Below, piece by piece: positions 4,872-62,920 of a stretch of DNA of 64,000 bases. The notes below the pieces were generated by a model, which saw nothing but the letters and a program-made list of their open reading frames with translations, did not search any database and was not told where the DNA came from. The number at the start of each line of letters is the position of its first letter. The stretch's first letter is position 1. The stretch comes from Hemiscyllium ocellatum. Taxonomy: Eukaryota. The DNA is taken from assembly GCF_020745735.1 (NCBI RefSeq), contig NC_083417.1, forward strand, positions 72,478,001-72,542,000, read 5' to 3'. Made by a program: the position numbers and the translations under genes.

Positions 4872-5312
4872 GCTAGGCCTCTGACAAGGTTGCACAAGGC
4901 AGGTTAGTCAGGAAGGTGAGGTCGCATGGGATCCAGAGAGAACTAGTTAATTGGTTACAAAATTGTCTTGATGGTAGGAAGCAGAGGGCGATGGTTGAAG
5001 GTCGTTTTTTCACACTGGAGACCTGTGACCCGTGGTGTGCCACAGGGGTCGATGCTGGGAACTTGTTATTTGCTATTTACATAAATGATCTGGATGTGAA
5101 TGTACCAGGCATGATTAGAAAGTTTGCAGATGATATAAAATTTTGAGGTATCGCTGATAGCGAGGAAGGTTACCAAAATTTACAGAGGGATCTTGATCAA
5201 ACGGGGAAGCCGGCTGAGAATTGGCAAATGCAATTCAATACAGGTAAATATGAAGTGTTGCACTTTGGAAAGTGAAACAAAGTTAGATCTTAAGTAGTAA
5301 ATGGTAAAGTCC
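4872..5312 (+). mobile_element. CR1 RT fragment
   Basis: LFAIYINDLD...IRKFADD. Confidence 0.85.
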
Positions 5313-6695: not shown

Positions 6696-6770
6696 TCAAC
6701 TGTTTGGCTTGTTGTTGTTGATTGCTTTTTAAACAGTTAAAACTCCACATTAATGTGCAGAGGCATTTAC

Positions 6771-7081
6771 CAAATACGGTAAGTTGCACAGAAGTTTATT
6801 TTCCAACTATTCGACGCTGATATTTGACGACACAGTAATATGTTGCAGTATCCTGGACAGTTACATTCAGAAAATTAAGGTAGGCTACTCCTTTAGTGAC
6901 ATTGAAAAACTTGCTGCTATCCTCCTGCAGAAAGGTTTTGTCACCTTCTCTCCGACAGTAAGCAATAACATTTGAATAGCCGATTTTGAGGAAGAAAAGA
7001 CAAAGCAAGAAACGGTTGAACCCCTCTAAGCTGTTATTCATTTCAGATGTGGATTCACTTTGGCCAAAATACTCACAGCAG
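6771..7081 (-). pseudogene. Pseudogene A: disabled VJ-type V exon
   Basis: gatag|CT to G|GTAAAT, 311 nt. Reads AAVSILAKVNPHLK*ITA*RGSTV(fs)LLCLFFLKIGYSNVIAYCRREG...LNVTVQDTATYYCVVKYQRRIVGK*TSVQLTVF. Three stops, one frameshift, core Trp changed to Cys. Confidence 0.85.
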
Positions 7082-7280
7082 CTATCAACCAAAGAAACAC
7101 ACTGAGATTAAACAAGAAGGACAGTCTGCACCAAATAACATTGTTATTCCAGACGATTGATGCAACAATACTTTATGGCACTTTACTCATCAACTAATTC
7201 TCCAGTTTTTAAATTATTGGTCGAATTGAATGCCATATTTTCTTCCTACTAACTTAGTGGAAAATGAGTTCTGGGAATAC

Positions 7281-8404: not shown

Positions 8405-9965
8405 TTCATAGAACACAGAACATAGAAAAATACAGCGCAGTACAGGCCCTTCGGCCCTCGATGTTGCGCCAACCGAAGCCTACCTAACCTACACTAGCCC
8501 AAAAACCTCCATATGCTTATCCAATGCCCGTTTAAATAACCATAAAGAGGGAGAGTCCACCACTGCTACTGGCAGGGCATTCCATGAACTCACAACCCGC
8601 TGAGTAAAGAATCTACCCCTAACATCTGTCCTATACCAACCTCCCCTTAATTTAAAGCTGTGTCCCTGAGTAACAGCTGACTCCATACGCGGAAAAAGGT
8701 TCTCACTGTCAACCCTACCTAAACCCCTAATCATCTTGTACACCTCTATCAAGTCACCCCTAAACCTTCTTTCCTCCAATGAGAACAGCCACAAGTGCCT
8801 CAGCCTTTCCTCATACGATCTTCCTACCATGCCAGGCAACATCCTGGTAAACCTCCTCTGCACCCGTTCCAGTTCCTCCACATCCTTCCTATAGTATGGC
8901 GACCAAAACGGCACACAATACTCCAGATGAGGCCGCACCAGAGCTTTTACAACTGCAACATGACCTCAGGACTCCGGAACTCAATTCCTCTACCAATAAA
9001 GCTCAGTACGTCAATTGCCTTCTTCACAGCACTATTTACCTGAGTGGCAACTTTCAGAGATCTGTGTACATGGACACCAAGATCCCTCAGCTCATCCACA
9101 CTACCAAGTAGCCTACCATTAGCCCAGTAATCCATCTTCTTGTTACTCCTACCAAAGTGAATGACTTCACACTTAGCTACATTGAACTCCATTTGCCACC
9201 TTTCTGCCCAGCTCTGCAGCTTATCTATATCCCGCTGTAACCTGCCACATCCTTCTTCGCAGTCCACCATTCCACCGACTTTCGTATCATCCGCAAACTT
9301 GCTCACCCAGGCTTCAAGCCCCTCCTCCAGGTCATTTATAAAAATGACAAACAGCAATGGTCCCAAAACAGATCCTTGTGGAACACCGCTAGTAACTGCA
9401 CTCCAAGATGAACCTTTGCCATCAACTACTACCCTCTGTCTCCTTCGAGCCAGCCAATTCCTAATCCAAACTTCTAATGCACCCTCAATGCCATACCTCC
9501 GTAATTTTTGCAGTAGCTTATCATGGGGTACCTTATCGAACGCCTTGCTAAAATCCACATACACCACATCTACTGCTTTACCCTCGTCCACTTCCTTGGT
9601 CACCTTCTCAAAGAACTAAATAAGGTTTGTGAGGCACGACCTGCCCTTCACAACACCATGCTGACTATTCTTGATCACATTATTCCTATCCAGATGTTCA
9701 TAAATCCTATCCATTACAATTCTCTCTAAGACTTTACCTACAACAGAAGTGAGACTCACTGGCAGAAAGTTACTAGGGCTATCCGTACTCCCCTTCTTGA
9801 ACAAGGGGACCACATTCGCTATCTTCCAGTCTTCTGGCGCTATTCCTGTTGACAACGACGACATAAAAATCAAGGCCAATGGCTCCGCTATCTCCTCCCT
9901 AGCTTCCTAGAGGATCCTAGGATAAATGCCATCAAGTCCAGGGGACTTATCTATTTTTAACCTTT
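8405..9965 (-). mobile_element. Relatively young 5'-truncated CR1 LINE
   Basis: ORFs 9616-9879, 8947-9603 and 8489-8938 contain YVDFSKAFDKVPH, GVPQGSVLGPLLFVIFINDL and KFADDTK. Confidence 0.97.
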
Positions 9966-26722: not shown

Positions 26723-26777
26723 ATGTTAGCACTTGATCTGTTGAATTACCTTTCGACATTAGGCATTATTTACATAG
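26723..26777 (+). CDS. Gene C exon 1: signal peptide of IgSF V-C1-TM-ITIM receptor
   Basis: ATG at 26723, MLALDLLNYLSTLGIIYI, then G|GTATAT phase-1 donor. A 181-bp intron joins it in frame to the V exon. Confidence 0.75.
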
Positions 26778-26958
26778 GTATATGCATTTAAGACTTTCGG
26801 ATCAGTAGAAGTGGAATAAGAACTGTGTGACGATCGCTGATACTTAATGTTTATTGTAGTTTCCGCTTTAATTACATTATACAATAACGGTTTTATTTCT
26901 ATTTAATGCTCTTGAATTATCACTGTTGATAATCTCTGTTTGTGCTCATTTCTGACAG

Positions 26959-27282
26959 CCTCAGACACTGTGACCCCTTTCTCCTTGCATCAGGTCCCAC
27001 AGCGTGTGACCGGAGTGAAAGGCGAAAACATTTCCATTAATTGCTCTGTGTCTTTATTCATTCGGAATGCAAAATTAGATGTTTATTGGTGGAAGAAAGG
27101 GCAACGCTCAACTTTTAGTATGACGAGAGAGAAAACGAAAATAGCAATGCCTTTTCACCAAGGATTTTCCGAGTTCCACCTGATCAATGTGAGTTTTCAA
27201 GATTCTGGGGTTTATTACTGCAGCGTTAAAAAAGGGCCAGGAATGAGGTCTAATGGCACTGGGACTGAGGTCACAGTATACG
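26959..27282 (+). CDS. Gene C exon 2: germline-joined VJ-type Ig V domain
   Basis: Acceptor tttctgacag|CC, donor G|GTAAGT, 324 nt phase 1-1, open. Motifs GENISINC, VYWWKKG, NVSFQDSGVYYC and J-like SNGTGTEVTV. No RSS seen between the V and J parts. Confidence 0.95.
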
Positions 27283-27924
27283 GTAAGTGATACTGAGGAG
27301 CTAAAGGGCTCTTTGAAATTAATCAGCGAATACCAGCGAATAAGCAAATGAAAATGTCTCTCTATGCTCATCTCTCATTGTATTTGCAGCGAATGTTTTC
27401 TGGTGAAATAGCCGCATTTATTGCAGGAGTGATCACATTTGAATGCCAGACTTAACCAATAATTTCTTTCTGAGGGATTATGTATATATTTTTGAAGCAC
27501 CCCTTTTTAATGATTTTCTTCGGCTGAGTAATGTCGGCATTGCCACTGTTGGTTTCTTACCATTTGAGAGAGTTTCTTTTTCTTCCCATTTCCCAATGCC
27601 TCCTTCCAACATGATTGAAATTGTAATCCTAAAGCAATAAACAATATGTAATATATTTCTAAGACATAATAGTGCCTGACCTGAAAGGGGTTTGTGGTCC
27701 TGGTCTGCTCATGAGGATGTTGTCCTTTTGTTTCCAAGTTACAGTACTTTTATGATGGTTGATGCAAAACGCTACGGACTCTAGTGGTGCAGCGGTAGTA
27801 TCCTTACCTTTGAGACAGGATATGACTTTCCAGCATCTGCTGTCATTACTATCACCATTGAGGCATGCAGCTTTGGTTCAAGTCCCACCTGTTCCAGAGG
27901 TATATAATAATATTCCAGTGCAGG

Positions 27925-28150
27925 GAGGAGAAACTGAGGACTACAGATGCTGGGGATCAGAGTCGAGAGTGTAAAAGCACAGCAGGCGAGACAGCATCTG
28001 CTCGCTAGGAGAAAGTGAGGACTGCAGATGCTGGAGGTCAGAGCTAAAAAATGTGTTGCTGGAAAGGCGTAGCAGGTCAGGCAGTGTCTAAGGAGCAGGA
28101 GAATCGACATTTCAGCCCTTCTTCAAGAATTCTGCCCAAAACTTCGATTC
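27925..28150. repeat. Penelope-derived tail / inverted element in gene C intron 2
   Basis: aaagtgaggactgcagatgctgga...ggagcaggagaatcg...cgattctcctg; the head motif is duplicated. Confidence 0.65.
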
Positions 28151-28420
28151 TCCTGGTCCTGCATTACAAGTGTGGTCTACCAAAGTTTTATAGAGCAGCA
28201 ACAAGATCTCACGGCTCTTAAACTCAATCACCCTGTTAACGAAAGCCAAAACACCATATGCTTTCTTAACAACCCTGTCCACCTCGGTGGCAATTATAAG
28301 GGATTTATGTACCTGCACACCAAGATCCCGCTGTTCCTCCACACTGCCAAAAATCCTGTCTTTAATCTTGTACTCAACTTTCCAGTTCAACCTTCCAAAA
28401 TGCATGACCTCGCATTTATC
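28150..28420 (-). mobile_element. CR1 fragment in gene C intron 2
   Basis: MHFGR...EQRDLGVQVH.SL...VDRVVKKAYGVLAF. Confidence 0.85.
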
Positions 28421-28576
28421 CAGGTTGATAGCAGGTCAGGCAAAATCCGAGGAGCAGGAGAATTGACATTCCGGGCATAAGCCCTCCATCATCCAGTGCC
28501 ACACTTTTTGACTTCAAACGCTTCAATCTAAAAATCACACAACACCAGTTTATAATCCAGCAGGTATATTTAGAAA

Positions 28577-28611
28577 CACTAGCTTTCGGAGTGTTGCTCC
28601 TTCATTAGGTG
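28577..28611 (-). ncRNA. Hammerhead motif of the same family, core mutated
   Basis: cac-CTAATGA-A-GGAGcaacaCTCC-GAA-AGCT-A-gtg; G5 changed to A. Confidence 0.55.
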
Positions 28612-28786
28612 GTTATGAGGTATAAGATCCTAAGACACAGAATTGACACAGACACTTCAAGCTAGTTATGGTGATTGAAACTCCAGCTCAGAAATGATCT
28701 GCCTTCCAGGTAGGTAGTCGTGCTTCTGTTGTCTTTGGAATGGCATGAAACGTGTTTTAAACTTATTTCCTTTGGCTTATTCACAG

Positions 28787-29068
28787 TGCCTCCAACTCCA
28801 ATAACGATTACTCGACTGTCCTCTCAATTCCTCACACTTCTCTGTACGACAGCTAGCTTCTTCCCAGAAGAATTTAACCTCACCTGGTATGAAAATGACA
28901 GAATAATTACATCTGGAATAAATACTACAAAGTTTCAGGAAAGGGAGGGATTACATCAAGTTTCCAGCTCCTTATATCCTGTGGAGATCGGGTTAGTTTA
29001 TACCTGCCAAGTTTCTCATGTTTCACTGGTGGACCCAGCCAATGACAGCTACTTGGTTTCAGATCAGG
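28787..29068 (+). CDS. Gene C exon 3: Ig C1-set domain
   Basis: ttattcacag|TG to G|GTAAGA, 282 nt phase 1-1, open. C1 motifs LLCTTASFFPEEFNLTWY and YTCQVSH. Confidence 0.95.
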
Positions 29069-30123
29069 GTAAGAGTCTCAGCTTCTTCATATTCCCCTGA
29101 ACTATAATTTGTTAGATTTAACAGGGCAATATTAGCACTCTGTCTCCAATAATCTGCAACATAACTTAAAGTAATTACATGATTGGCAAGAGATTGACTT
29201 CAAGCTTTTTTAAAAAAATCATTGGATAGCATGGAAGGAAGCCATTTTGTTTATTTTACATTGTCATGTTCTTTGTCATGCTATTCTATTTGGCCCTCGC
29301 ATCCACTTCATCGCAATAAATTCTCCCTTTAGTTTTTATTCCAATTTTTTTTCAAATGTGATCATTGAAACATCTTTCCTGCTTTTAGAAAAAAGATTCC
29401 AGATTATAACACACTATATAAGTAGAGCTTCCTCCATTCCCTTGCCAAATGTTGCCTGTTTGTGTGCCAATTACTCTAAATACACATCTTTGAATAACCA
29501 ACCATTCCACCGCTCTTTTTCTACACTGTATTTAAATATTGATTTTAAACACAGCTATATCAATTTGTCTTAATCATTGCAGCACCATGAAGAATAGTGC
29601 TGGCTTCTCCACTGATTTTACACAATGAAAATCCCTTGTGTCACTCTGGTATGTAGCTTTGTATATGCATATGCATGCCTATGTACTGTGAGGATATTCT
29701 GTTCTAACAACCTATTCAGATTCTATATTCTAGCCATGCTTAATTCCACTCTAATCCCCATTATTCTTCAGAATCAAATGCACCCCTTTATTTTAAAAAT
29801 CTATTCAACAAGACTCTTGCATTTTTTCAACATGTCTGTGTTTTGCATAAACAAATCTCACATGCATATAACATAAACAAAGTTAAACATGATAATTATG
29901 CTGAACAAAATGCTTAAATGATCAGAAAATTGAATTGTGTGTTCTTTAAACCAAGTTTGCTCAGTTAATACTGTCATCAAACCTCTGGATAAATGGAGAG
30001 TTTATTACATTGGTGAGAGACGATGGGTTTGATGTGTCAGAGGAGCCTGTTATCTGTTGTTGCATATTATTTAGCATCATTTGGTCTTTAAATGCGAATG
30101 TTTATATTCTCTATCATCTTTAG

Positions 30124-30237
30124 GTAAAAAAGGAAGTGGTTTCTCCTATGCCGTAGCATTAAGCTGGACAGCAGGATGTTTTCTAATTTTGGTTCTGGCA
30201 ATTGTTGTCAGGCAATACAAACTAGAGAGATCTCATG
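30124..30237 (+). CDS. Gene C exon 4: uncharged transmembrane segment
   Basis: catctttag|GT to G|GTAAGA, 114 nt phase 1-1. Encodes GKKGSGFSYAVALSWTAGCFLILVLAIVVRQYKLERSH. Confidence 0.88.
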
Positions 30238-30589
30238 GTAAGACTATGATTAAAAGTTGACTTAAAACATTAAGGGTACTGCAATGGTGCGGAAGTAAGG
30301 GGATAGGTTATTATATCAACAGGCCACTGTAATGAGATAGTTTACCATACTGATATGGCTCATCAGGATAACTTCAACAAACAATAACTGAATTGTCAGG
30401 TTTTTTTGTGATAAATGAGAATGAGAAATAGAATGAGTATGTTAAATACCTTTGAGGCTGGATTGACGAAAAAAGACACAACAACTATGAGTCAGAAAAA
30501 ACAAATCAGCAAAGCAAGACAGAAATATTTCAGTTACTCAACGGATCAGACAACATCAATGAGATAAAAGCAGAGGTAATACTTCAAGA

Positions 30590-31510
30590 TGTGAACATAG
30601 GAGGTATGATTAGTAAATTGCAGATGACACCAAAATTGGAGGTGTGGTGGACAGTGAAGAAGGTTACCTCAGAGTACGATGGAATCTTGATCAGAGGGGC
30701 CAAAGGCTCAAGGAGTGATAGATGAAGTTTAATTTAGATAACTGTGAGCTGCTGCACATTGGAAAGGCAAATCAGGCAGGTCTATACATTTAATGTTAAA
30801 TTCCTGGGGAGTGTCGCTGAACAAAGAGACCTTGGAGTGCAGGTCCATAGTTCCTTGAAAGTGGAGTTGCAGGTAGATAGCATGGTGAAGAAGGTGTTTG
30901 ATATGCTTGCCTTTCACGTCAGAGTATTGTGTATAGGAGTTGGGAAGATATGTTGCAGCTCTGTGGGACATTGGTTAGACCATTTTTGGAATAGAGTGTG
31001 CAGTTTTGATCTCCCTGCTATAGTAAGGGCATCCTGAAATTTGAAAGTGTTCATAAGAGGTTTACAAGGATTTTGCTAGGTTGGCGGGTTTGAGTTCTCA
31101 GGAGAGGCTGAATAGACTGGGACTACTTTCTCTGGAGTATCAGAAGCTGTGGCCCTTACAGTAGTTTATAAAATGATGTGGGGATAACAGACAAGATTTT
31201 TTTCCCAAGGGTTCAGGAGTCCAAAGCAAGCTGGCATTGTTCTAAGGTGAGAAGTGAAATATTTAAAAGGGACCTAAGGAGCACGTTTTAATGCAGAGAG
31301 TGGTGCATGTATGGAATGAGCTGCCTGAGGAGGTGGAACAATTGCACCATTTAAAAGGAATTTGGATGGGTATATGAATAGAAAGGGTATGGAGGTATAT
31401 GGGCCAAATGCTGGCAAATGGAACTAAATATTTAGGATATCTAGTCAGCATGGAAGAGTTGAACTGAAGGGTTTGTTTCTGTGCTGTATATCTTTTGGAC
31501 ACTATGACTG
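30590..31510 (+). mobile_element. CR1 3' portion in gene C intron 4
   Basis: EQRDLGVQVHSSLKV and WNELPEEV. Confidence 0.88.
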
Positions 31511-31808
31511 TATGACACATTTTTAGAACATTAACTCTGTTTTCATTTCCACAAATAATGTCTGACCTGCTAAATATTTCCAGCAAATTCTGTTTTTATG
31601 TAATACTTCCAGCATCTACTGTATTTTACTTTTGCGAGCAACATGACATGTAAAATTGATCACATCTCAACCAGCGATAGAATTGGGTATTTTTTTAATT
31701 GGTGATTATGCTGCTCATACTTTGCTCAAAGTTTGGGTTTTATCCTTTTTTCACAGACATACCTGACATTTTGAAATTCATTATTGGTGTAAATTTGTTC
31801 TGTGGCAG

Positions 31809-31852
31809 GTGATACAGTTGCTGAGGAAATTGACAGCCAGGTTGAGGAGCAG
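31809..31852 (+). CDS. Gene C exon 5: 44-nt cytoplasmic exon
   Basis: tgttctgtggcag|GT to CAG|GTCAGT. Encodes GDTVAEEIDSQVEEQ. It gives exactly the phase 1-to-0 change needed to keep exon 6 in frame. Confidence 0.75.
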
Positions 31853-32444
31853 GTCAGTTTGGTCTGTTTTTATAAAACCCAGGCGACTTTTGCAATGCAC
31901 TTAATGCTTTCACCTGTTGCAGGTATATCTAGTTTCCTGGTATGTCAGAAAATCACCAACTAATTGTGGAAAATGTGCCAAACATAATTCATTCATGGAA
32001 CTCTCAGGATCCTGAGGGAATATTATAAATGCTGTTGTTGACAGTGGTCTTTTCCACTGCTCATTCGGCATTTATCAAAATTCTTTACAAGGTATAGTCT
32101 GCATAATTTTGTAATAAGATTGATTCTCCCACCCGCTAATGTTTGAACGGCTGCTGAGTGTTGACTGCTGCTGCTCTGTATCAGGGATTTGACTCTGTGC
32201 CTTGGTTCAGAGCTTTCGCAGAAAAATGCATCTTCGAAATTAAGCAAACTCGGAACTTGAATGTCCAATAAGCAGGAGGTGGACATACGCCAATCCTTAC
32301 CCCATCTGGTCAAGATGCGGAATGTAACTGTGAATTAGAAGTAGCATTCAGATAAATGACATCAGCTCAAAGTTAGTGGTCTCAATTGTCCTCAGTAGAA
32401 AATTATTGATTGGCCAATGTCATTTAAGGAGCAAAAAGCAGATA

Positions 32445-32605
32445 TTGCTGGGAAAAATTCAGCAGGTTTGGCAGCATCTGTGGAGAGGAAACAGAGTTAA
32501 TGTTTCAGGTTGAGTGACCCTCCTTTGGAACTTTTCAAAACTTGTTCAGAAGGGTCACTGGACCTGAAACATTAACTGTTTTTTGTTACAGATGCTGCCA
32601 GGCAA
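32445..32605. repeat. Inverted-repeat element, gaagggtc hammerhead family
   Basis: ttaatgtttcaggt..gtgaccct / agggtcac..acctgaaacattaa arms around a 12-nt spacer. Confidence 0.7.
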
Positions 32606-34290
32606 GGGTCAGACAGGGTTTTGGAGAGTTATAAGGTGGCCAGGAAGGAAATTTACATAGATTCCTGAACGTTCCAATACAGGTTGATAGGATTGTTAAA
32701 AAGCATACGGTGTCTGAGCTTTTATTAGTAGAGGGATTGAGTTTCAGAGTCAGAAGGTCATGCTGCAGCTGTTCAAAACTCTGGTGCCTCTGCACTTGGA
32801 GTATTGCATTAGTTCTCGTCACTGCATTGTAGGAAGGCTGTGAAAGCTTTGGAATGGGTTCAGAGTTGACTTTCTAGGATGTTGCCTGGTATGGAAGGGA
32901 GGTCTTATGAGGAAAGACTGAGGCACTTGAAGCTATTTTCATTCAAGAGAAGAAGACAGTGAGGTGACTGAATTGAGATGTATAAGATAGTTGGAGGGTT
33001 AGATAGGGGTGGACAGTGAAAGCCTTTTTCCTCAGATGGTGATGGCTAGCATGAGGGGACATAGCTGCAAATAGAGACGTGATCAATATAGGACAGATAT
33101 CAAAGGTAGTTTCTTTACTCAGAGTAGTAAGGGCATAGAATGCCCTGCCTGCCATTGTAGTAGACTCGCCAATTTGAAGGACATTTAAAAGGCCATTGGA
33201 TATGCATATGGATGAAAATGGAATAGTGTAAGGTAGATAGGGTTCAAGGATGTGGCTGAGCTGAGCTGGAATGTTCAGTTTCAGATGTTTCGTCACCATA
33301 CTAGGTAACTTTTTCCAGTGAGCATCCAGATAAAGCACTGGTGGTGTAGCCCGCTTTCTATTGATATGTTCAGGCTTCGTTTAATTGGTGATGTCATTTC
33401 CTATGGTGACATAATCTCCTATGGTGATGTCATTTCCTGTTCTTTTTCTCAAGGGTCCATAAATGGGATCCAAGTCAATGTGTTTGTTGTTAGGGTTATG
33501 GTTGGAATGCCATGCTTCTAGGAATTCTCGTGTGTGTCACTGTAGGCTTGTTTTTGGATGGATGTGTTGTCCCAGTCAAAGTAGTGTCCATCCTCATCCG
33601 TATGTGAGGATAGTAGTGAGAGTGTGTCATCTTTTTGTGGCTAGTTGATATTCACAAATCCTGTGGCTAGTTTTCTGCCTGTTTGTCCAATGTCATGTTT
33701 ATTACAGTTCTTGCAAGGTATTTTGTAAATAACATTAGTTTTGCTTGTTGTCAGTATCGGGTTTTTCAAGTTCATGAGCTGCTGTTTTAGTGTACTGGTA
33801 GGTTTCATGGGCAACCATGATACCAAGAGGTCTGAGTAGTTTGGCAGTCATTTACAAGGCGTCTTTGATGTAGGGAAGACATAGGGAAGACCATATTCAA
33901 ACTTTTCTCATTGAAGCGAAGAAGGATGAGAGGTGACTCAATAGAGGTGTTCAAGATGATGAGAGGCACAGATAGAGTGAATAGTCAAAGACTTTTCACT
34001 AGGGCAGAAACGGCTATCACAACGGGACATAATTTTAAGGTGATTGAAGGCAGGTTTAGAAGAGATGACAGAGAATGATTTCCACAGAATGATTGGTGCG
34101 TGGAATGCATGCCAGCGGTGCTACTAGAGTCAGATACAATAGGGACATTTGAGCGACTCATGGAAATGCACATGGATAATAGTAAAATGAAAGGTGTGTA
34201 GGTTAGTTTGATAGACGAATAGGATAAAAGGTCAGCAATGGGCCGAATGGCTGCACTGTACTGTACTGTTCTATGTTCCATGCTACCAAA
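32605..34290 (+). mobile_element. CR1 pieces (about 32605-33240 and 33890-34290) split by the Penelope fragment
   Basis: CR1 RT C-terminal motifs on both sides. Confidence 0.75.
33245..33880 (-). mobile_element. Penelope-like element 3' fragment with GIY-YIG endonuclease
   Basis: TNVIYKIPCKNCNKHDIGQTGRKLAT (33641-33826). A decayed hammerhead (GTTACC-tagtat-GGTGAC-GAAAC) follows at 33282-33320. Confidence 0.85.
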
Positions 34291-34497
34291 CCTGCTGAGT
34301 TTTTCTCACAATTATTGTTTTTATTTCTAATTTCTAGCATCAGCAGTTCTTTCATTTTCAGTTTATTTAATGCCATTCAAGCTCTGGGTGCTGTTTTTGC
34401 AGACCCCAAATATGTTTTGTTGTTGATATTTTCCTGAACTAATTTTGCTTTTGTTTCAATTTGATAAGTAACTAATATTCTCACAAATTCTCCACAG

Positions 34498-34641
34498 GTC
34501 ATCCATAAAGGAAAAGTGGAGGACCCAGCTTATGCTGATCTCCACTTCAATGAACACAGGAAAATGTGGAAACCCAGAAATGAGAAAGCGACTGTTGTTT
34601 ATACAAACATAAATTACCTTTCTGTCCAGGACCAATTCTGA
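34498..34641 (+). CDS. Gene C exon 6: cytoplasmic tail with ITIM-type motifs and stop
   Basis: aattctccacag|GTC, phase 0. Encodes VIHKGKVEDPAYADLHFNEHRKMWKPRNEKATVVYTNINYLSVQDQF*. VVYTNI fits the ITIM consensus and PAYADL is ITIM-like. Confidence 0.88.
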   Translation, partial: VIHKGKVEDPAYADLHFNEHRKMWKPRNEKATVVYTNINYLSVQDQF

Positions 34642-41830: not shown

Positions 41831-43957
41831 TGCATCTGCTGTGCATGGTTTCCTAAGATAATCATTGTTGTTTCCACAGACCAAGCAAGAGACAGTTGAG
41901 AAAACACCTTCTGCATTTTGAGATCTCATTACTTCTGAGAAAGTGTCAAGAGTGAAAACAAGAAGAGCATGGCAAGAGTACGAGAATCCAGTGAAGCAAA
42001 GACAGAGAAACCTAGATCTCATGGGTGGGAGAAGTGTGACGGATCATGTCCTTGTTATTGTCTGAATACTAACTGCATAACCTAGACTTATTGTAAAGTG
42101 TTCCATAAATAAGTAGATTAAGGAGGGAGCACAGGAAATATAGAGAAACTCTTCGATCTTGATTTTTGCGCATTCTTAAAAATATTGATCATTGTATGAA
42201 TACTGCATTATTTATCATACAATTCACGTGGGAAGATTGTGACCTGTTGTTCAGTTCAGTTGAAGACAACAAGCTGGATCAGTTATTTCAAATATTACTA
42301 TGTCACAATTTTATAGAAGAGTTACATTACTGGCCACTAGTCTCAAGATGTCACTGACGTGTTGATACTCTTTACACTACCCTCATCTCAGCCTTCTTTA
42401 TCAAACCCATTTCAAATAGCTTTCTATTCACTTCCACAGCATGTATTTCTCCAAACCATCCTTAAACCCACCAATACGCTAGGTGACAACTTCTGCTGGT
42501 GGTAGCAATTTGCACATTCCAAGTGGTCCTCAGTAAGGACCAGGAAGTGGTTCCCAGGCATGTATTTCCTCTTGCATCAGTGTTTTCTCGTATTTATGAC
42601 TTCTATTTCTAGAACCATGTACAACTGTAATTGTTTATTTGGTGCTTACTCTGTTAATCCTATTTGTAATCCTAAATGCGTCTATCACGTCACCCTTCAA
42701 CCTTAAGACCATAAGAGGTAGAATTAGTCCATTAATTTCTATGACCCTTGCTAGTGTTACTTTAGCTCCACCTATTGATATGATCCAATACAGCAGTGTT
42801 TTCGTGGTATTCAGAAATGTATCAATTTGCCTAAAAAATAAATTTCACAATGCTTTTCATGACCATCATCTGAATTACAAATCTTCACAACAATCAAAAT
42901 ATTTCTGAAACATTACTTCATATTGTAAGAAATGAATAAGCTGAACATTAAACATAGAACATTTGAGTGCAGTACAGGGCCTTTGGCCCTGTTGCGCTTA
43001 CCTGTGAAACCAAAGTTTCATTTTGCTGAGTCGTCAACCTTGCCACATTCCTCTTTGGTCAAAAATTACAAAATATGTACAACAGCTGGAGAGGCAAAAA
43101 AAAATCCTCATCTTAATCCTGAGTGAACAAGCCTGTTCAGCCATCGAGTCTTACTAGCGGTATGTAACAACTTGCAACATCTAGTCCATTAAGTTTCTTC
43201 AGAATTTTGTACACACCTCAATGAGTTAACCTCAGTTTCTGTTTGACTTCTTCCAAGGAATATTAATCTGTGCACTCAGTATTTGTTTAAAACACAATAC
43301 GTTGATTCCAGCAGCCACTGTAATGAACAAAAACAGAGACTTCTGGAAAAAAACTCAGCAGGTCTGGCAGCACCTGTAGAGAGAAAGTAGAATGAATGTT
43401 TTGGGTCCATTGACCCTTCTTTAGAACAGTATGTCTCCAGTGCTAACACATTTCCCCTATATGCCAGATATGTAGATCCCAATGAACTCCAGTATTTCCC
43501 ATTCTCTCAGCATTTACAAATTATTCTGTTGTTCTTTTATTTATTTCCTTCCAAATGTATAACCTAACCCCAACTTTATTCCCTCTTTCACAATCTTGCC
43601 CATTCACTAAATTAGTCTAATATTAGACTCAATCAATGTAATTGGGTATTTAATTAGTAACAGTCTGTCAATTACAAAGTCAAATGACTGTCTGATTTCT
43701 CTCCATTGATCAGTCCATGATTCATACTTACTTAAAATTAAGTTCCATTTAACTTAGGTTTTATTAGCAAAAGTCCCAATTCCTTGGTTAAATGCTTCAT
43801 TATCTTCGTGTCCATAAGTACAGATAGAGGATATTATTGTCTATAACGGTGTGAAGAGCTTCTTAATATTCTGTCAGCTTCCTTATGTGATTGTCTATTT
43901 GCTTTTTGTTTGGTAGATTTTTCTAATTGCATTACACCATGTTAATATTTCTGGCAA

Positions 43958-55525: not shown

Positions 55526-55610
55526 CTGACGGTTGTAATTACTTTGCACTTGTTTGTCCTTTTTAAGCAATATCGGAAAGATTCCCGTACAACGTGCCAT
55601 GGAACCTTAC

Positions 55611-55952
55611 CTTCATTCAGAACAGTGTCGCTGGCATTTGCTGGAAATGAACTCGAAACATGATATTCTTGACATGTATAGACGATGTCATTCCCGGGTG
55701 ACTTTGGCATGTCCAAGGAGCTGACGACTTTATAAAGACCCTCGCCGGTTGCCTGTTTTACGTTTCTAAACCCAGTGAAGATTTGTGTACCGTCTCTGTG
55801 CCAAGTCAGGTTATAGTCTTCTGGATAAAAGCCAGATGTCCTGCATTGTAATTTGGAAGAAGCAGGCGGAGTGTGCGGGCATTGGACTTCTACTCTAATA
55901 TTTAAAAGGTTTGCTTAACGATCCAAGAGATTTATTTCTGGGTAGGCCGGTG
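55611..55952 (-). pseudogene. Pseudogene B: C1-set exon with in-frame stop
   Basis: APAYPEINLLDR*...KLQCRTSGFYPEDYNLTWHRDG...EGLYKVVSSL...VYTCQEYH, donor G|GTAAGG. The expected acceptor AG is missing (tttgtg|CA). Confidence 0.85.
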
Positions 55953-56241
55953 CACAAATCGTCATTATTTATACTGGGAGGGATTGCTATTGCTTTTACC
56001 ATGTAGCGACCTCCTTATGGAATTGATGCATCATCTGTAGATGGGGTGCTACCTTCTGACCATATTAATTAACACAAATCTGTTTGAGTTGCCATACTGC
56101 AACCTGCTCGCAATGACCAGTTTGGGAACTGGATCATAGAAAACGAGACTGCTGGAGTACCAACGAGGGGAATAGGAATTTGGCTTTTCAAAGCAGAAAA
56201 CAACATGACATTTAAAATGTTTAATATTGCCGACAACTTAC

Positions 56242-56444
56242 CCTGTTACCCCATGCTTAAACTGTCAAACCTACTTCACGTAGAAGTCTTGCATTAACTT
56301 TGTATTCAACACAAATTTCAATACCATTTGCTGACACAGTGCAGTTGCCGCACTGTGTTGTGCCACTGGTGGTGCCTTTTAACCAAGTTATTAAGCATGT
56401 CATCCCAAAGAAGTGAACGATTTTGTATGCACTGCATTTTTTCT
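56242..56444 (-). pseudogene. Pseudogene B: Cys-containing exon X between V and C1
   Basis: The 75-bp upstream intron has a TACTAAT branch site and cttttcag|AG acceptor. Reads EKKCSAYKIVHFFGMTCLITWLKGTTSGTTQCGNCTVSANGIEICVEYKVNARLLREVGLTV*, with a strong G|GTAAGT donor at 56241. Confidence 0.6.
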
Positions 56445-56519
56445 CTGAAAAGTAGCTGCCCACGCAAATTCACTGTTCATTAGTACGAAGGCTTAACGTT
56501 TAACTGTGGTGACACTAAC

Positions 56520-56788
56520 CGTAGTCAACAAGTTGCGCAGCGGGTTTGTGAGAAACCATTTGATGCTGATATTTGACTATACAGTAATATGTTCCAGCGT
56601 CCATGACAGTCACATTGAAGAGATTACTTCCTCCAGAAGCATCCTGTTACCTTCCCTCGACCAGAAAACATTGATGTTTGAATGGTTGAGTTCAAAAGGG
56701 AAGGGGCATCGCATGATAACTCTTGGAGTAATCAGGGTCTTTATTTGCAGAATATCCGGAGTGACATTGTCCGACGTGCACACCACAA
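56520..56788 (-). pseudogene. Pseudogene B: frameshifted VJ-type V exon
   Basis: aatag|TT to G|GTTAGT, 269 nt (not 3n). Reads RVIMRCPFPFELNHSNINVFWSREG...(fs)NLFNVTVMDAGTYYCIVKYQHQ...AQLVDY. Paralogous to the pseudogene A V exon. Confidence 0.85.
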
Positions 56789-56961
56789 CTATTAACAAAA
56801 GCTAAATACACAGATTTGGCAGGGAGAATGGCTCACACCATGAAGTAATATAATTAATTCAGTACACTCGTTCAGCAGGAATTTAGCATGCCTTGCTGTT
56901 TTAATCCTGCTCCACGATCTGAATTTCTGTCCTAGCTGAATTATCACAAATCTGTTTTCAC

Positions 56962-60369: not shown

Positions 60370-62920
60370 ACAAAGAGCAAAGATGTCGTCAATCAAAGGA
60401 GAAATCATGCATGGCAAATCTGTTGGATTTCGATGAAGTTGGAATCAGTACAGTTGACAAGGGGGAGCCTGTCGATGCGTATATTTGGACCTTCAGAAAG
60501 TGTTTGACAATGACTTGCATAAGAGATTATTGTGCAAGTTTGAAGTGCATGGGATTGAGGCAGTGTAATGTGATGATTATAAAACTGGTTGGCTGAGAGG
60601 GAACAGCAAGTAGGAATTAATGGGTCATTCTTGCATTGGCAGGAAAACTGGGGTGCCACAGAAATAGGTGCTGGGACCCTAGCTATTGACAATATATACT
60701 GATGATTGGATGAGGGAACAAAAGGTAATATCTCAATGTTTGCAGGTGATACCAAGTTGGGTGGAAGGGTGAATTGTAATGAGGATGCAGAGATCCTTCA
60801 GAATGACCTCGACAGGTTCAGTGAGAGGGCAAATCAATGGTAGATGCAGTATAATTTGGATAAATGTGAACTTATTCACTTTGAAAGCAATAACACGAAG
60901 GCAGATGGCTACGTGAATTGTTGTAAGTTGCGGAGGGCAGTGTGCAGCAGGACTTTGTGCATCAGTCGCTGAAAGTTAGCATGTCGTGCATTCAGTGGTA
61001 AAGTTACTGGAAAATAGTATGTTGGCCTTGACTGTGAGTGGTTTTGAGTGCAGGAGCAGGGATGTGTTGTTGCAATTATACAGGGAATTGATGATGCCAC
61101 AACTAGAATAGTGTGTGCAAGTTTGATCTCCTTCTCATAGGGTCCTAGGGTCATAGAGATGTACAGCATGGAAACAGACCCTTCAGCCAAACTCGTCCAT
61201 GCTGACCAGGTATCCCAACCCAATCTAGTTCCACCTGCCAGCACCCGGCCCATATCCCTCCAAACCCTTCCTATTCATATGCACATTCAAATGCCTCTTA
61301 AATGTTACAGTTGTACAAGCCTCCTCTGGCAGCTAATTCCATTAATGTACCACCCTCTGCGTGAAAAAGATGCCCCTTAGGTCTCTTTTATGTCTTTCCC
61401 CTCTCACCCTAAACCTATGCCGTTTAGTTCTGGACTCCCCGACCCCAGAGAAAATACTTTGACTATTTATCCTATCAATGCTCCTCATAATTTTGTAAAC
61501 CTCTATAAGGTCTCCCCTCAGCCTCCGACGCTCCAGGTAAAACAGTCCCATCCTGTTCAGCCTCTCCCTAGAGCACAAATCCTCAAACCCTGGCAACATC
61601 CTTGTCAATTCTTTCTGAACCCTTTCAAGTTTGCAACATCTTTCCGATTGAAAGGAGACCAGAATTGCATGCAACATGCCAACAGTGACCTAACCAATGT
61701 CATGTACAGCCGCAACATGACCTCCCAACTCCTGTACTCAATACTCTGACCAATAAAAGAAAGCATACCAAACGCCTTCGGCACTATCCTATCTACCTGG
61801 ACTCCACTTTCAAGGAGCTATGAACCTGCACTCCAAGTTCTCTTTGTTCAGCAATACTCCCTAAGACCTTGCCATTAAGTGTATAAGTCCTGCTAAAATT
61901 TGCTTATCAAAATGCATCACCTCGCATTTATCTGAATTAAACTCCATCTGCCACTTCTCAGCCCATTTGCTCATCTGGTCAAGATCCTAATGTAATCTGA
62001 GGTAACCCTCTTCGCTGTCCACTACACCTCCAATTTTGGTGTCATCAGCAAACTTACTAACTGTACCTCTTATGTTCGCATCCAATCCATGTATGTAAAT
62101 GACCAAAGGTAGAGCGCCCAGCACCGATCCTTGTGGCACTCCACTGGTTACAGGCTTCGAGTCTGAAAAACAACCCTCCACCACTACCCTCTGTCTTCTA
62201 CCTTTGAGCCAGTTCTGTATCCAAATGGATAGTTCTCCCTGTATTCCATGAGACCTAAGCTTGCTAATCAGTCTCCCATGGGGAACCTTGTCGAACACCT
62301 TACTGAATTCCATATAGATCACATCAACTGCTCTGCACTCATCAATCCTCTTTGTTACTTCTTCAAAAAACTCAATCAACTTTGTGAGACACGATTTCCC
62401 ACGCACAAAGCCATGTTGACTAACCCTAATCAGTCCTTGCCTTCCAAATACAAGTACATCCTGTCCCTCAAGATTTCCTCCAACAACTTGCCCACCACCG
62501 AGGTCAGGCTCACTGGTCTATAGTTCCCTGGTTTGTCTTTACCACCCTTCTCTTTCTCTTGAGGGAGAGCAGCGAAGGGTTACCAGACTGATTCCAGGGA
62601 TGACAGGACTGGAAGAGGAGAGATTGATTAACTGAGGATGGTTTTCGCTGGGGTTCAACTGAATGAGGTGGATATAATTGACACTTACAAAGTTCTAACA
62701 TGACAAGACAAGGGTAGATGCAGGAAGACATTCTTGATGGTGGGTGTGTCCAGGACCAGGTTTCACAGACTGAGGATTCGTGGGTGGACCATTTAGGACA
62801 GAGACGAAGAGAAGTTTCTTCCTGCAAAGGGTTGTGAGCCTGTCGAATTCATTACCATTGGATGTACTGGATGCAATAACATTGAAAGTATTCAAGAGGC
62901 GGCAATTATTACAAAGTAAA
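60370..62920. mobile_element. CR1 cluster: + (60370-61140), - (61145-62530), + (62560-62920)
   Basis: ORF 61987-62406 contains EFSKVFDKVPH, GVPQGSVLG and SKFADDTK. ORF 61342-61677 contains LERVQK.LTRMLPG. Confidence 0.9.

Follow-up and report, generated by a model that had tools for sequence, protein, structure and literature searches.

The question raised by this locus is whether a gene that combines an antigen-receptor-like ectodomain with a tyrosine-bearing cytoplasmic tail is a relic of the ancestors of rearranging receptors or belongs to some family of signalling receptors. The gene lies at positions 26723-34641, on the plus strand, of the window, by which we mean the whole stretch of 64,000 nucleotides (nt) that was analysed from the genome of the epaulette shark Hemiscyllium ocellatum (assembly GCF_020745735.1, contig NC_083417.1, positions 72,478,001 to 72,542,000). 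With a probability of about three in four, we take it to be an intact type I membrane receptor, an inhibitory-type member of a paired-receptor family of cartilaginous fishes in which a variable (V) domain is followed by a single C1-set domain (the V-C1 family), and which would work in a SIRPα-like manner. Its assignment to the SIRP family proper is unproven.

The six-exon model with GT-AG boundaries and matching phases that the first-pass annotation had proposed proved correct when we rebuilt it from the letters of the window, which contains no runs of N. The exons add up to 963 nt and encode 320 amino acids followed by a TGA stop codon, with no internal stop or other lesion; all of the internal boundaries are AG/GT, the acceptors are pyrimidine-rich and the phases run 1-1-1-1-0. 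Exon 1 (26723..26777) carries the start codon and most of a split leader (residues 1-18) and ends with a GT donor in phase 1, and exon 2 (26959..27282) holds the end of the leader and the entire V-set domain including its J-like G strand (residues 19-126). The C1-set domain (residues 127-220) occupies exon 3 (28787..29068). A short stalk, an uncharged transmembrane helix and the start of the tail are encoded by exon 4 (30124..30237), an acidic cytoplasmic stretch (residues 259-273) by the 44-nt micro-exon 5 (31809..31852), and the rest of the tail, with the motifs PAYADL, VVYTNI and INYLSV and then the TGA stop, by exon 6 (34498..34641).

The gene had been described as hidden, and this was not borne out, as RefSeq already contains it with a truncated N-terminus. 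An exhaustive search by HMMER, queried with the V exon and followed by retrieval of the 90%-identity cluster, led us both to that entry (XP_060693844.1, annotated in H. ocellatum as "tapasin-related protein-like") and to an orthologue from the bamboo shark Chiloscyllium plagiosum (XP_043563318.1, isoform X1). The RefSeq protein has 248 residues, which correspond with 100% identity to residues 73-320 of our model, so that the micro-exon 5 is corroborated along its whole length; it starts at the internal Met73 (window position 27120, in the V exon) and lacks exon 1 with the leader as well as the first 54 codons of exon 2, around half of the V domain. The bamboo-shark protein has 320 residues and is 91% identical end to end, without gaps and with the same start and stop. 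Junctions 2/3 to 5/6 are covered by XP_060693844.1 and junction 1/2 is also covered by the C. plagiosum isoform X1, so all five junctions are corroborated by two independent gene models. According to this, the 320-residue model, backed by the bamboo-shark orthologue, is better than the truncated one in RefSeq. As exon 4 is 114 nt long, its skipping preserves the frame, and a further C. plagiosum isoform (X3, XP_043563321.1) lacks exactly the 38 residues of this exon with the frame kept; as predicted, it would be a soluble form devoid of the transmembrane helix that retains the tyrosine tail.

Regarding the ectodomain, exon 2 alone matched the Pfam V-set model over its full length (positions 1-109, 8.1e-12) and exon 3 alone matched C1-set (4.3e-10). 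The V domain shows the hallmarks Cys47, Trp62 and DSGVYYC (residues 100-106), and the J-like G strand NGTGTEVTV (residues 117-125, 27252-27278) is found at the 3' end of the same exon, while the C1 domain shows Cys146, Trp160 and YTCQVSH. The transmembrane helix (residues 227-249, 30141-30209) is uncharged, seven N-glycosylation sequons are present, and the cysteines are located at positions 47, 106, 146 and 200 plus one in the transmembrane helix, none of them being a membrane-proximal interchain cysteine. Pfam searches and motif inspection have thus recovered every element attributed to the protein at first sight, namely a split leader, a germline-joined V domain of the VJ type, a C1-set domain, an uncharged transmembrane helix and a tyrosine-containing tail. 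A rearranging immunoglobulin (Ig) or T-cell receptor (TCR) gene is ruled out, because the V domain is encoded through its G strand in one unbroken exon and a scan found no recombination signal sequence at the V-J position, that is, between YYC and the G strand. The only match resembling such a signal in the scan, a perfect heptamer complement (CACTGTG, 26966-26972, plus strand) at the start of the V exon with a nonamer of three mismatches 22 nt away in the leader intron, was dismissed because it lies in the wrong place for V-J joining and ∼1.9 such matches are expected by chance per 9.5 kilobases (kb).

In the case of its relatives, the closest proteins are 30-58% identical over V-C1 and come from sharks (Heterodontus, Heptranchias, Scyliorhinus, Carcharodon, Cetorhinus, Mustelus, Rhincodon, Pristiophorus, and Chiloscyllium), rays and skates (Mobula, Leucoraja, Amblyraja, Hemitrygon, and Hypanus), and a chimaera (Callorhinchus). 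The source was looked up for 26 different V-C1 relatives, all of which proved to be chondrichthyan, and a word-indexed search with a profile of 26 members returned chondrichthyan proteins only; the non-chondrichthyan matches of the exhaustive search were multi-V proteins of turtle, lizard and lungfish with a different architecture. In an alignment of 26 sequences, C47, W62, C106, G120, C146, W160, C200 and H204 are invariant, and the G strand NGTG[ST]xLxV, a VPPTP linker and the YxCxVSH of C1 are invariant or at least 90% conserved. The protein of the window has every column that is invariant or at least 90% conserved in that alignment, and the aligned relatives share with it the presence of only one C1 domain between the V domain and the transmembrane helix. 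In a maximum-likelihood tree of the ectodomains, the gene pairs with the C. plagiosum isoform X1 with 100/100 support on a long stem of 0.54 substitutions per site, and the pair falls inside an elasmobranch-only clade of 12 rows (100/99), with the chimaera sequences in the other half of the tree.

Several short relatives from other species carry an Arg in the transmembrane helix and tails of 8-19 residues, and so are of the activating type. The coexistence of these members with others whose tails bear immunoreceptor tyrosine-based inhibitory motifs (ITIMs) corresponds to the layout of a family of paired inhibitory and activating receptors. Family genes are predicted in every annotated cartilaginous-fish genome under automatic names such as PTPNS1-like (SIRPα), SIRPβ-like, tapasin-related-like, NCR3LG1-like, Ig lambda-1-like, CD276 homolog, or H-2 class I-like, of which the SIRPα-like one (PTPNS1-like) is the most frequent; our literature search found no paper describing the family. 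All these data show that the gene is a member of a large multigene V-C1 paired-receptor family of sharks, rays and chimaeras. The initial view that it could not be assigned to any named family has to be revised in this sense, since it sits in a large chondrichthyan family that had already been predicted.

The cytoplasmic tail has 71 residues and three tyrosines (Y285, Y308, and Y313), two of which lie in canonical ITIMs according to the consensus (I/V/L/S)xYxx(I/V/L). These are VVYTNI (residues 306-311, 34594-34611), which also includes a YxN, and INYLSV (residues 311-316, 34609-34626). Y308 and Y313 are five residues apart and Y285 lies 23-28 residues upstream of both, a spacing that is typical for the docking of tandem-SH2 phosphatases. 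All three tyrosines and the position of the stop codon are kept in the C. plagiosum orthologue. In most relatives the tail is longer and bears four or five tyrosine motifs (xxYAxL/YAxL, TVYAQT, LTYAxL, and EYAEI), and no convincing distal tail exons were found 3' of the stop within the window. We also observed, 7 kb downstream (41868-41981, plus strand), a weak similarity of 38 residues to a tail segment of paralogues (QTKQGT...RRKQK), with E-values of 0.2-1.8 and interrupted by a stop codon, which could be a decayed remnant of a distal tail or a chance match.

Inhibitory SIRP receptors are the known proteins whose function is best supported as a model for this gene. SIRPα and SIRPβ share with it a V domain of the VJ type with a joined G strand followed by a C1-set domain, the combination, in the inhibitory forms, of an uncharged transmembrane helix with a multi-tyrosine ITIM tail, and the existence within the family of activating, short-tailed counterparts with an Arg or Lys in the membrane. 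In contrast, SIRP proteins have two C1 domains, whereas the shark gene has a single C1 exon between V and the transmembrane helix, which counts against placing it in the SIRP family proper; moreover, SIRPα has four tail tyrosines and the shark gene three, with two in canonical but overlapping ITIMs. When the family profile was searched against all PDB sequences, with scores summed over domains, the V-C1-C2-C3 chain of UrIg2 was the top non-antibody match (4.5e-33), followed by the V-C1 part of the SIRPα ectodomain 2wng (1.1e-28), and SIRPγ scored 1e-24. SIRPα is thus the best non-rearranging surface receptor after UrIg2, while its score is equalled or exceeded by those of UrIg2 and of Ig chains. 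Multi-domain chains dominated the PDB searches with the V-only and C1-only profiles, and neither these nor the single-exon searches singled out SIRP. The tail motif pattern may resemble that of human SIRPα.

The fold did not discriminate further. Fold searches were run with an AlphaFold model (AF2) of the ectodomain of the C. plagiosum orthologue (predicted local distance difference test, pLDDT, 90.8; predicted template-modelling score, pTM, 0.84). Among the Swiss-Prot models of the AlphaFold database, CD276, CADM2, Ig light chains, PD-L1, NCR3LG1, SIRPα, TAPBPL and butyrophilins had near-equal E-values, and the top template-modelling (TM) scores, 0.74-0.75, were common to SIRPβ1, SIRPα, PD-L1 and CADM4. 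Foldseek against PDB in 3Di+AA mode was led by Ig light chains with TM-scores of only 0.4-0.47, low values that are explained by the predicted arrangement of the domains, which is extended and not Fab-like. The second domain of the model superposed on membrane-proximal C1 domains of major histocompatibility complex (MHC) class II with root-mean-square deviations of 1.2-1.5 Å and 24-30% identity (VIA-align). As B7, butyrophilin, nectin/CADM, SIRP, TAPBPL and Ig light-chain proteins all score nearly the same, the fold assigns no family, and among SIRP, UrIg and B7-H6 no parent family stands out by either sequence or fold. The earlier description of the protein as SIRP/NITR-like with a TCR/Ig-like ectodomain can be maintained for its function, an inhibitory SIRP-like one being best supported, but does not hold for its kinship, since a specific closeness could be shown to none of TCR/Ig, SIRP, NITR and tapasin.

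Several observations weigh against considering the gene a SIRPα-like inhibitory receptor. Regarding the tail, PAYADL (residues 283-288, 34525-34542) has a Pro at position -2 and falls outside the ITIM consensus, so that of the two motifs that the first-pass annotation had read as ITIMs only VVYTNI is canonical, the INYLSV motif having been overlooked; furthermore, as VVYTNI and INYLSV overlap and their tyrosines are five residues apart, they are usable only one at a time. The tail is also shorter than those of most relatives, two distal motifs are missing, and the orthologue stops early too. Regarding the transcript, exon 1 is missing from the RefSeq model of this species, and in C. plagiosum some isoforms have internal starts and one skips the transmembrane exon, which makes the support for a full-length transcript uncertain. 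In the searches, SIRP V domains were absent from the top 60 PDB matches whether the V exon or its profile served as query, a tail-only search with the four-motif tail of a chimaera protein retrieved chimaera proteins only and not SIRPα, and the rigid-body comparison by VIA-align was led by Rst/Neph1, B7-H6, PD-L2 and butyrophilins.

Part of these observations could be explained if the gene were a decaying or functionally marginal member of the family, its frame being still intact owing to the slow evolution of sharks and its short tail and long branch resulting from relaxed constraint. The stem of 0.54 substitutions per site within the subclade, the two missing distal motifs, the truncated RefSeq model and the heterogeneous bamboo-shark isoforms would agree with this, as would the presence of pseudogenised family fragments in the same window and the fact that the transmembrane and tail exons are those that diverge most from the orthologue (13-18%, versus 4% in the C1 exon, the best conserved, with 4 changes in 94 residues). 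However, the 963 nt in six exons are free of lesions in two genera with identical start, stop and length, all family-invariant structural residues and the three tail tyrosines are retained, the leader and the remainder of the first 47 residues are 100% identical to C. plagiosum isoform X1, and the AF2 model is confident (pLDDT 90.8). We consequently regard decay as improbable; the gene is a slightly atypical member of the family, with a short tail and a long branch.

The structural comparisons would also be compatible with a ligand of the B7/butyrophilin type, a counter-structure such as B7-H6 is for an NKp30-like receptor, in which the tail motifs would be incidental. B7-H6 (NCR3LG1), B7 proteins and butyrophilins share with the shark protein an extended V plus C ectodomain, a transmembrane segment and a cytoplasmic tail; B7-H6 was the third-best rigid-body match (Z 16.4 over 190 residues, 22% identity), with PD-L2, butyrophilins and B7-H3 close, CD276, PD-L1 and NCR3LG1 were among the top matches in the AlphaFold database, and several relatives are named NCR3LG1-like or CD276 homolog in RefSeq. 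Nevertheless, this likeness is unspecific, given that all V-C families score nearly equally in structure, and the G strand GxG-T-x-V-x-V is kept throughout the family. The V domains of B7 proteins are usually devoid of such a strand. Moreover, multi-ITIM tails beside short-tailed members with an Arg in the membrane are the signature of paired receptors. The shark family thus differs from B7 proteins and butyrophilins in its conserved J-like G strand, its multi-ITIM tails and the presence of activating-type partners, a combination that speaks for a receptor rather than a ligand, and we consider the ligand alternative unlikely.

Other named families were examined as well. In common with the shark protein, TAPBPL has a C1-set domain, and the V-like plus C1 segment superposes on residues 200-405 of mouse TAPBPL (TM-score 0.69, 24% identity). 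Assignment to tapasin/TAPBPL was rejected because the protein has no tapasin N-terminal domain and no tapasin-family Pfam match, its leader being followed by the V domain, and no tapasin or TAPBPR chain appeared among the 60 matches listed for the family profile against PDB. The name "tapasin-related" given in RefSeq is an artefact of automatic annotation that the domain content does not support. The novel immune-type receptors (NITRs) of teleosts and PRARP, V-C1 genes of chicken and bony vertebrates, are, like this gene, non-rearranging and have a V domain of the VJ type, and NITRs occur as multigene families that comprise inhibitory as well as activating members. The NITR ectodomain consists of a V domain, or of V and an I-type domain, and is not known to include C1, and NITRs are not known outside bony fish; here we have a shark gene with a C1-set second domain, so assignment to NITR was also rejected.

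Finally, we have considered whether the gene could be a surviving close relative of the VJ-C1 transmembrane gene that the RAG transposon had entered, and thus a true relic of the antigen-receptor precursor. Its layout, with the leader split, V and J in the same exon, a single C1 and a transmembrane segment, is that of a single TCR or Ig light chain, the best PDB matches in Foldseek are Ig light chains, the alignment of the V profile with V domains of TCR and Ig light chains runs from end to end, G strand included, and UrIg2 was the best compact V-C1 match in the profile search. That inhibitory VJ-C1 receptors such as SIRP are relevant to where antigen receptors came from is an established notion. 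VJ-C1 precursors and UrIg/UrIg2 have been discussed in this context (PMC10751288; PMC12227049), and PRARP has been cited as a VJ gene with a bearing on the origins of antigen receptors (PMC10751288). UrIg and UrIg2 have in common with the shark gene that they are elasmobranch, non-rearranging genes with a split leader, VJ in one exon and a constant domain of the C1 type. They carry several C domains, 9-11 in the case of UrIg2, which forms disulfide-linked dimers with Fc-like C2-C3 domains, exists as a single copy with expression in liver and gill and with linkage to the MHC or the Ig/TCR complex, and for which no ITIM tail is mentioned (PMC12227049). In contrast, the shark gene has a single C1 domain, an ITIM tail and no interchain cysteine, and belongs to a multigene family; a UrIg-like architecture was rejected on account of the single C1 and the lack of that cysteine.

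The features that recall a precursor are found as well in tens of paralogues and in known joined-VJ genes, which comprise CD79, NITR, SIRP, CD8, NKp30 and PRARP (PMC11599192). Furthermore, the gene is a derived tip in an elasmobranch-only clade, it has no membrane-proximal interchain cysteine, its interdomain geometry is extended and not Fab-like (TM-scores of 0.41-0.47 to light chains), the 64-kb window, where only family fragments and LINE remnants accompany it, revealed no linkage to Ig/TCR or MHC genes, and UrIg and UrIg2 are published candidates for this position backed by synteny (PMC12227049). We therefore find it very unlikely that this gene is such a relic. The relevance to the origin of rearranging receptors that had been proposed for it does not go beyond that of the joined-VJ genes already known (PMC11599192) and of UrIg/UrIg2 (PMC12227049), given its long derived branch in an elasmobranch-only subclade. 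The gene is real; it resembles a SIRP-type inhibitory paired receptor in its design, and it is no one-of-a-kind survivor from the ancestor of antigen receptors. A related possibility, which we consider unlikely, is that the family is not a SIRP offshoot and forms an independent ancient lineage of membrane VJ-C1 proteins with a single C1, whose ancestor would be as near to the pre-RAG gene as UrIg/UrIg2; if true, the family would constitute a second, signalling-competent class of antigen-receptor relics.

The surroundings of the gene consist of family remnants and fragments of long interspersed nuclear elements (LINEs), and we saw nothing else in the 64-kb window that could be coding, nor any gene from outside the family that could serve for synteny. 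The V and C1 exons found at 55585-56801, on the minus strand, represent a second subfamily, which is divergent, and have their best match in Heterodontus XP_067905013.1; the C1 is 39% identical to that of the gene and has CQEYH in place of the family CxVSH, while the V exon requires two reading frames, with a frameshift near 56630, and has a G strand without GxG, so the locus is probably a pseudogene. Another V exon from this minus-strand subfamily (YYCVVKYQRR...), with an in-frame stop in the FG loop, is found at 6730-7131, and ∼6 kb further along that strand, at 671-1074, lie fragments resembling tail exons, in which the motifs KLTYSAL and SPVYAVAK occur. Together they look like the remains of another gene of the family. 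LINE remnants are represented by open reading frame fragments of reverse transcriptase (RVT_1) at 8947-9603 and 61987-62406, both on the minus strand. The N-terminal extension of one Heterodontus protein attributed to the family matches LINE repeats of the window at 5081-5248, 9160-9459 and 61864-62208, which suggests that this protein is a mis-annotated gene model.

As to how the receptor could work, its V domain would bind some ligand on the cell surface or on a pathogen, after which Src-family kinases may phosphorylate Y285 and Y308 or Y313. The spacing of 23-28 residues between Y285 and the other two suits a tandem-SH2 phosphatase, and SHP-1/SHP-2-type phosphatases could be recruited and would damp nearby activating receptors, as SIRPα does. 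In practical terms, the RefSeq gene of the epaulette shark gets a corrected model and a corrected name. Moreover, the gene is one more inhibitory member of a paired-receptor family of cartilaginous fishes that is large and, it seems, undescribed, and that joins an ectodomain of the antigen-receptor VJ-C1 type with signalling of the ITIM or the Arg-transmembrane type. The single gene raises no new question, and it is the family as a whole that merits a phylogenetic and synteny study in relation to SIRP, PRARP, UrIg and B7.

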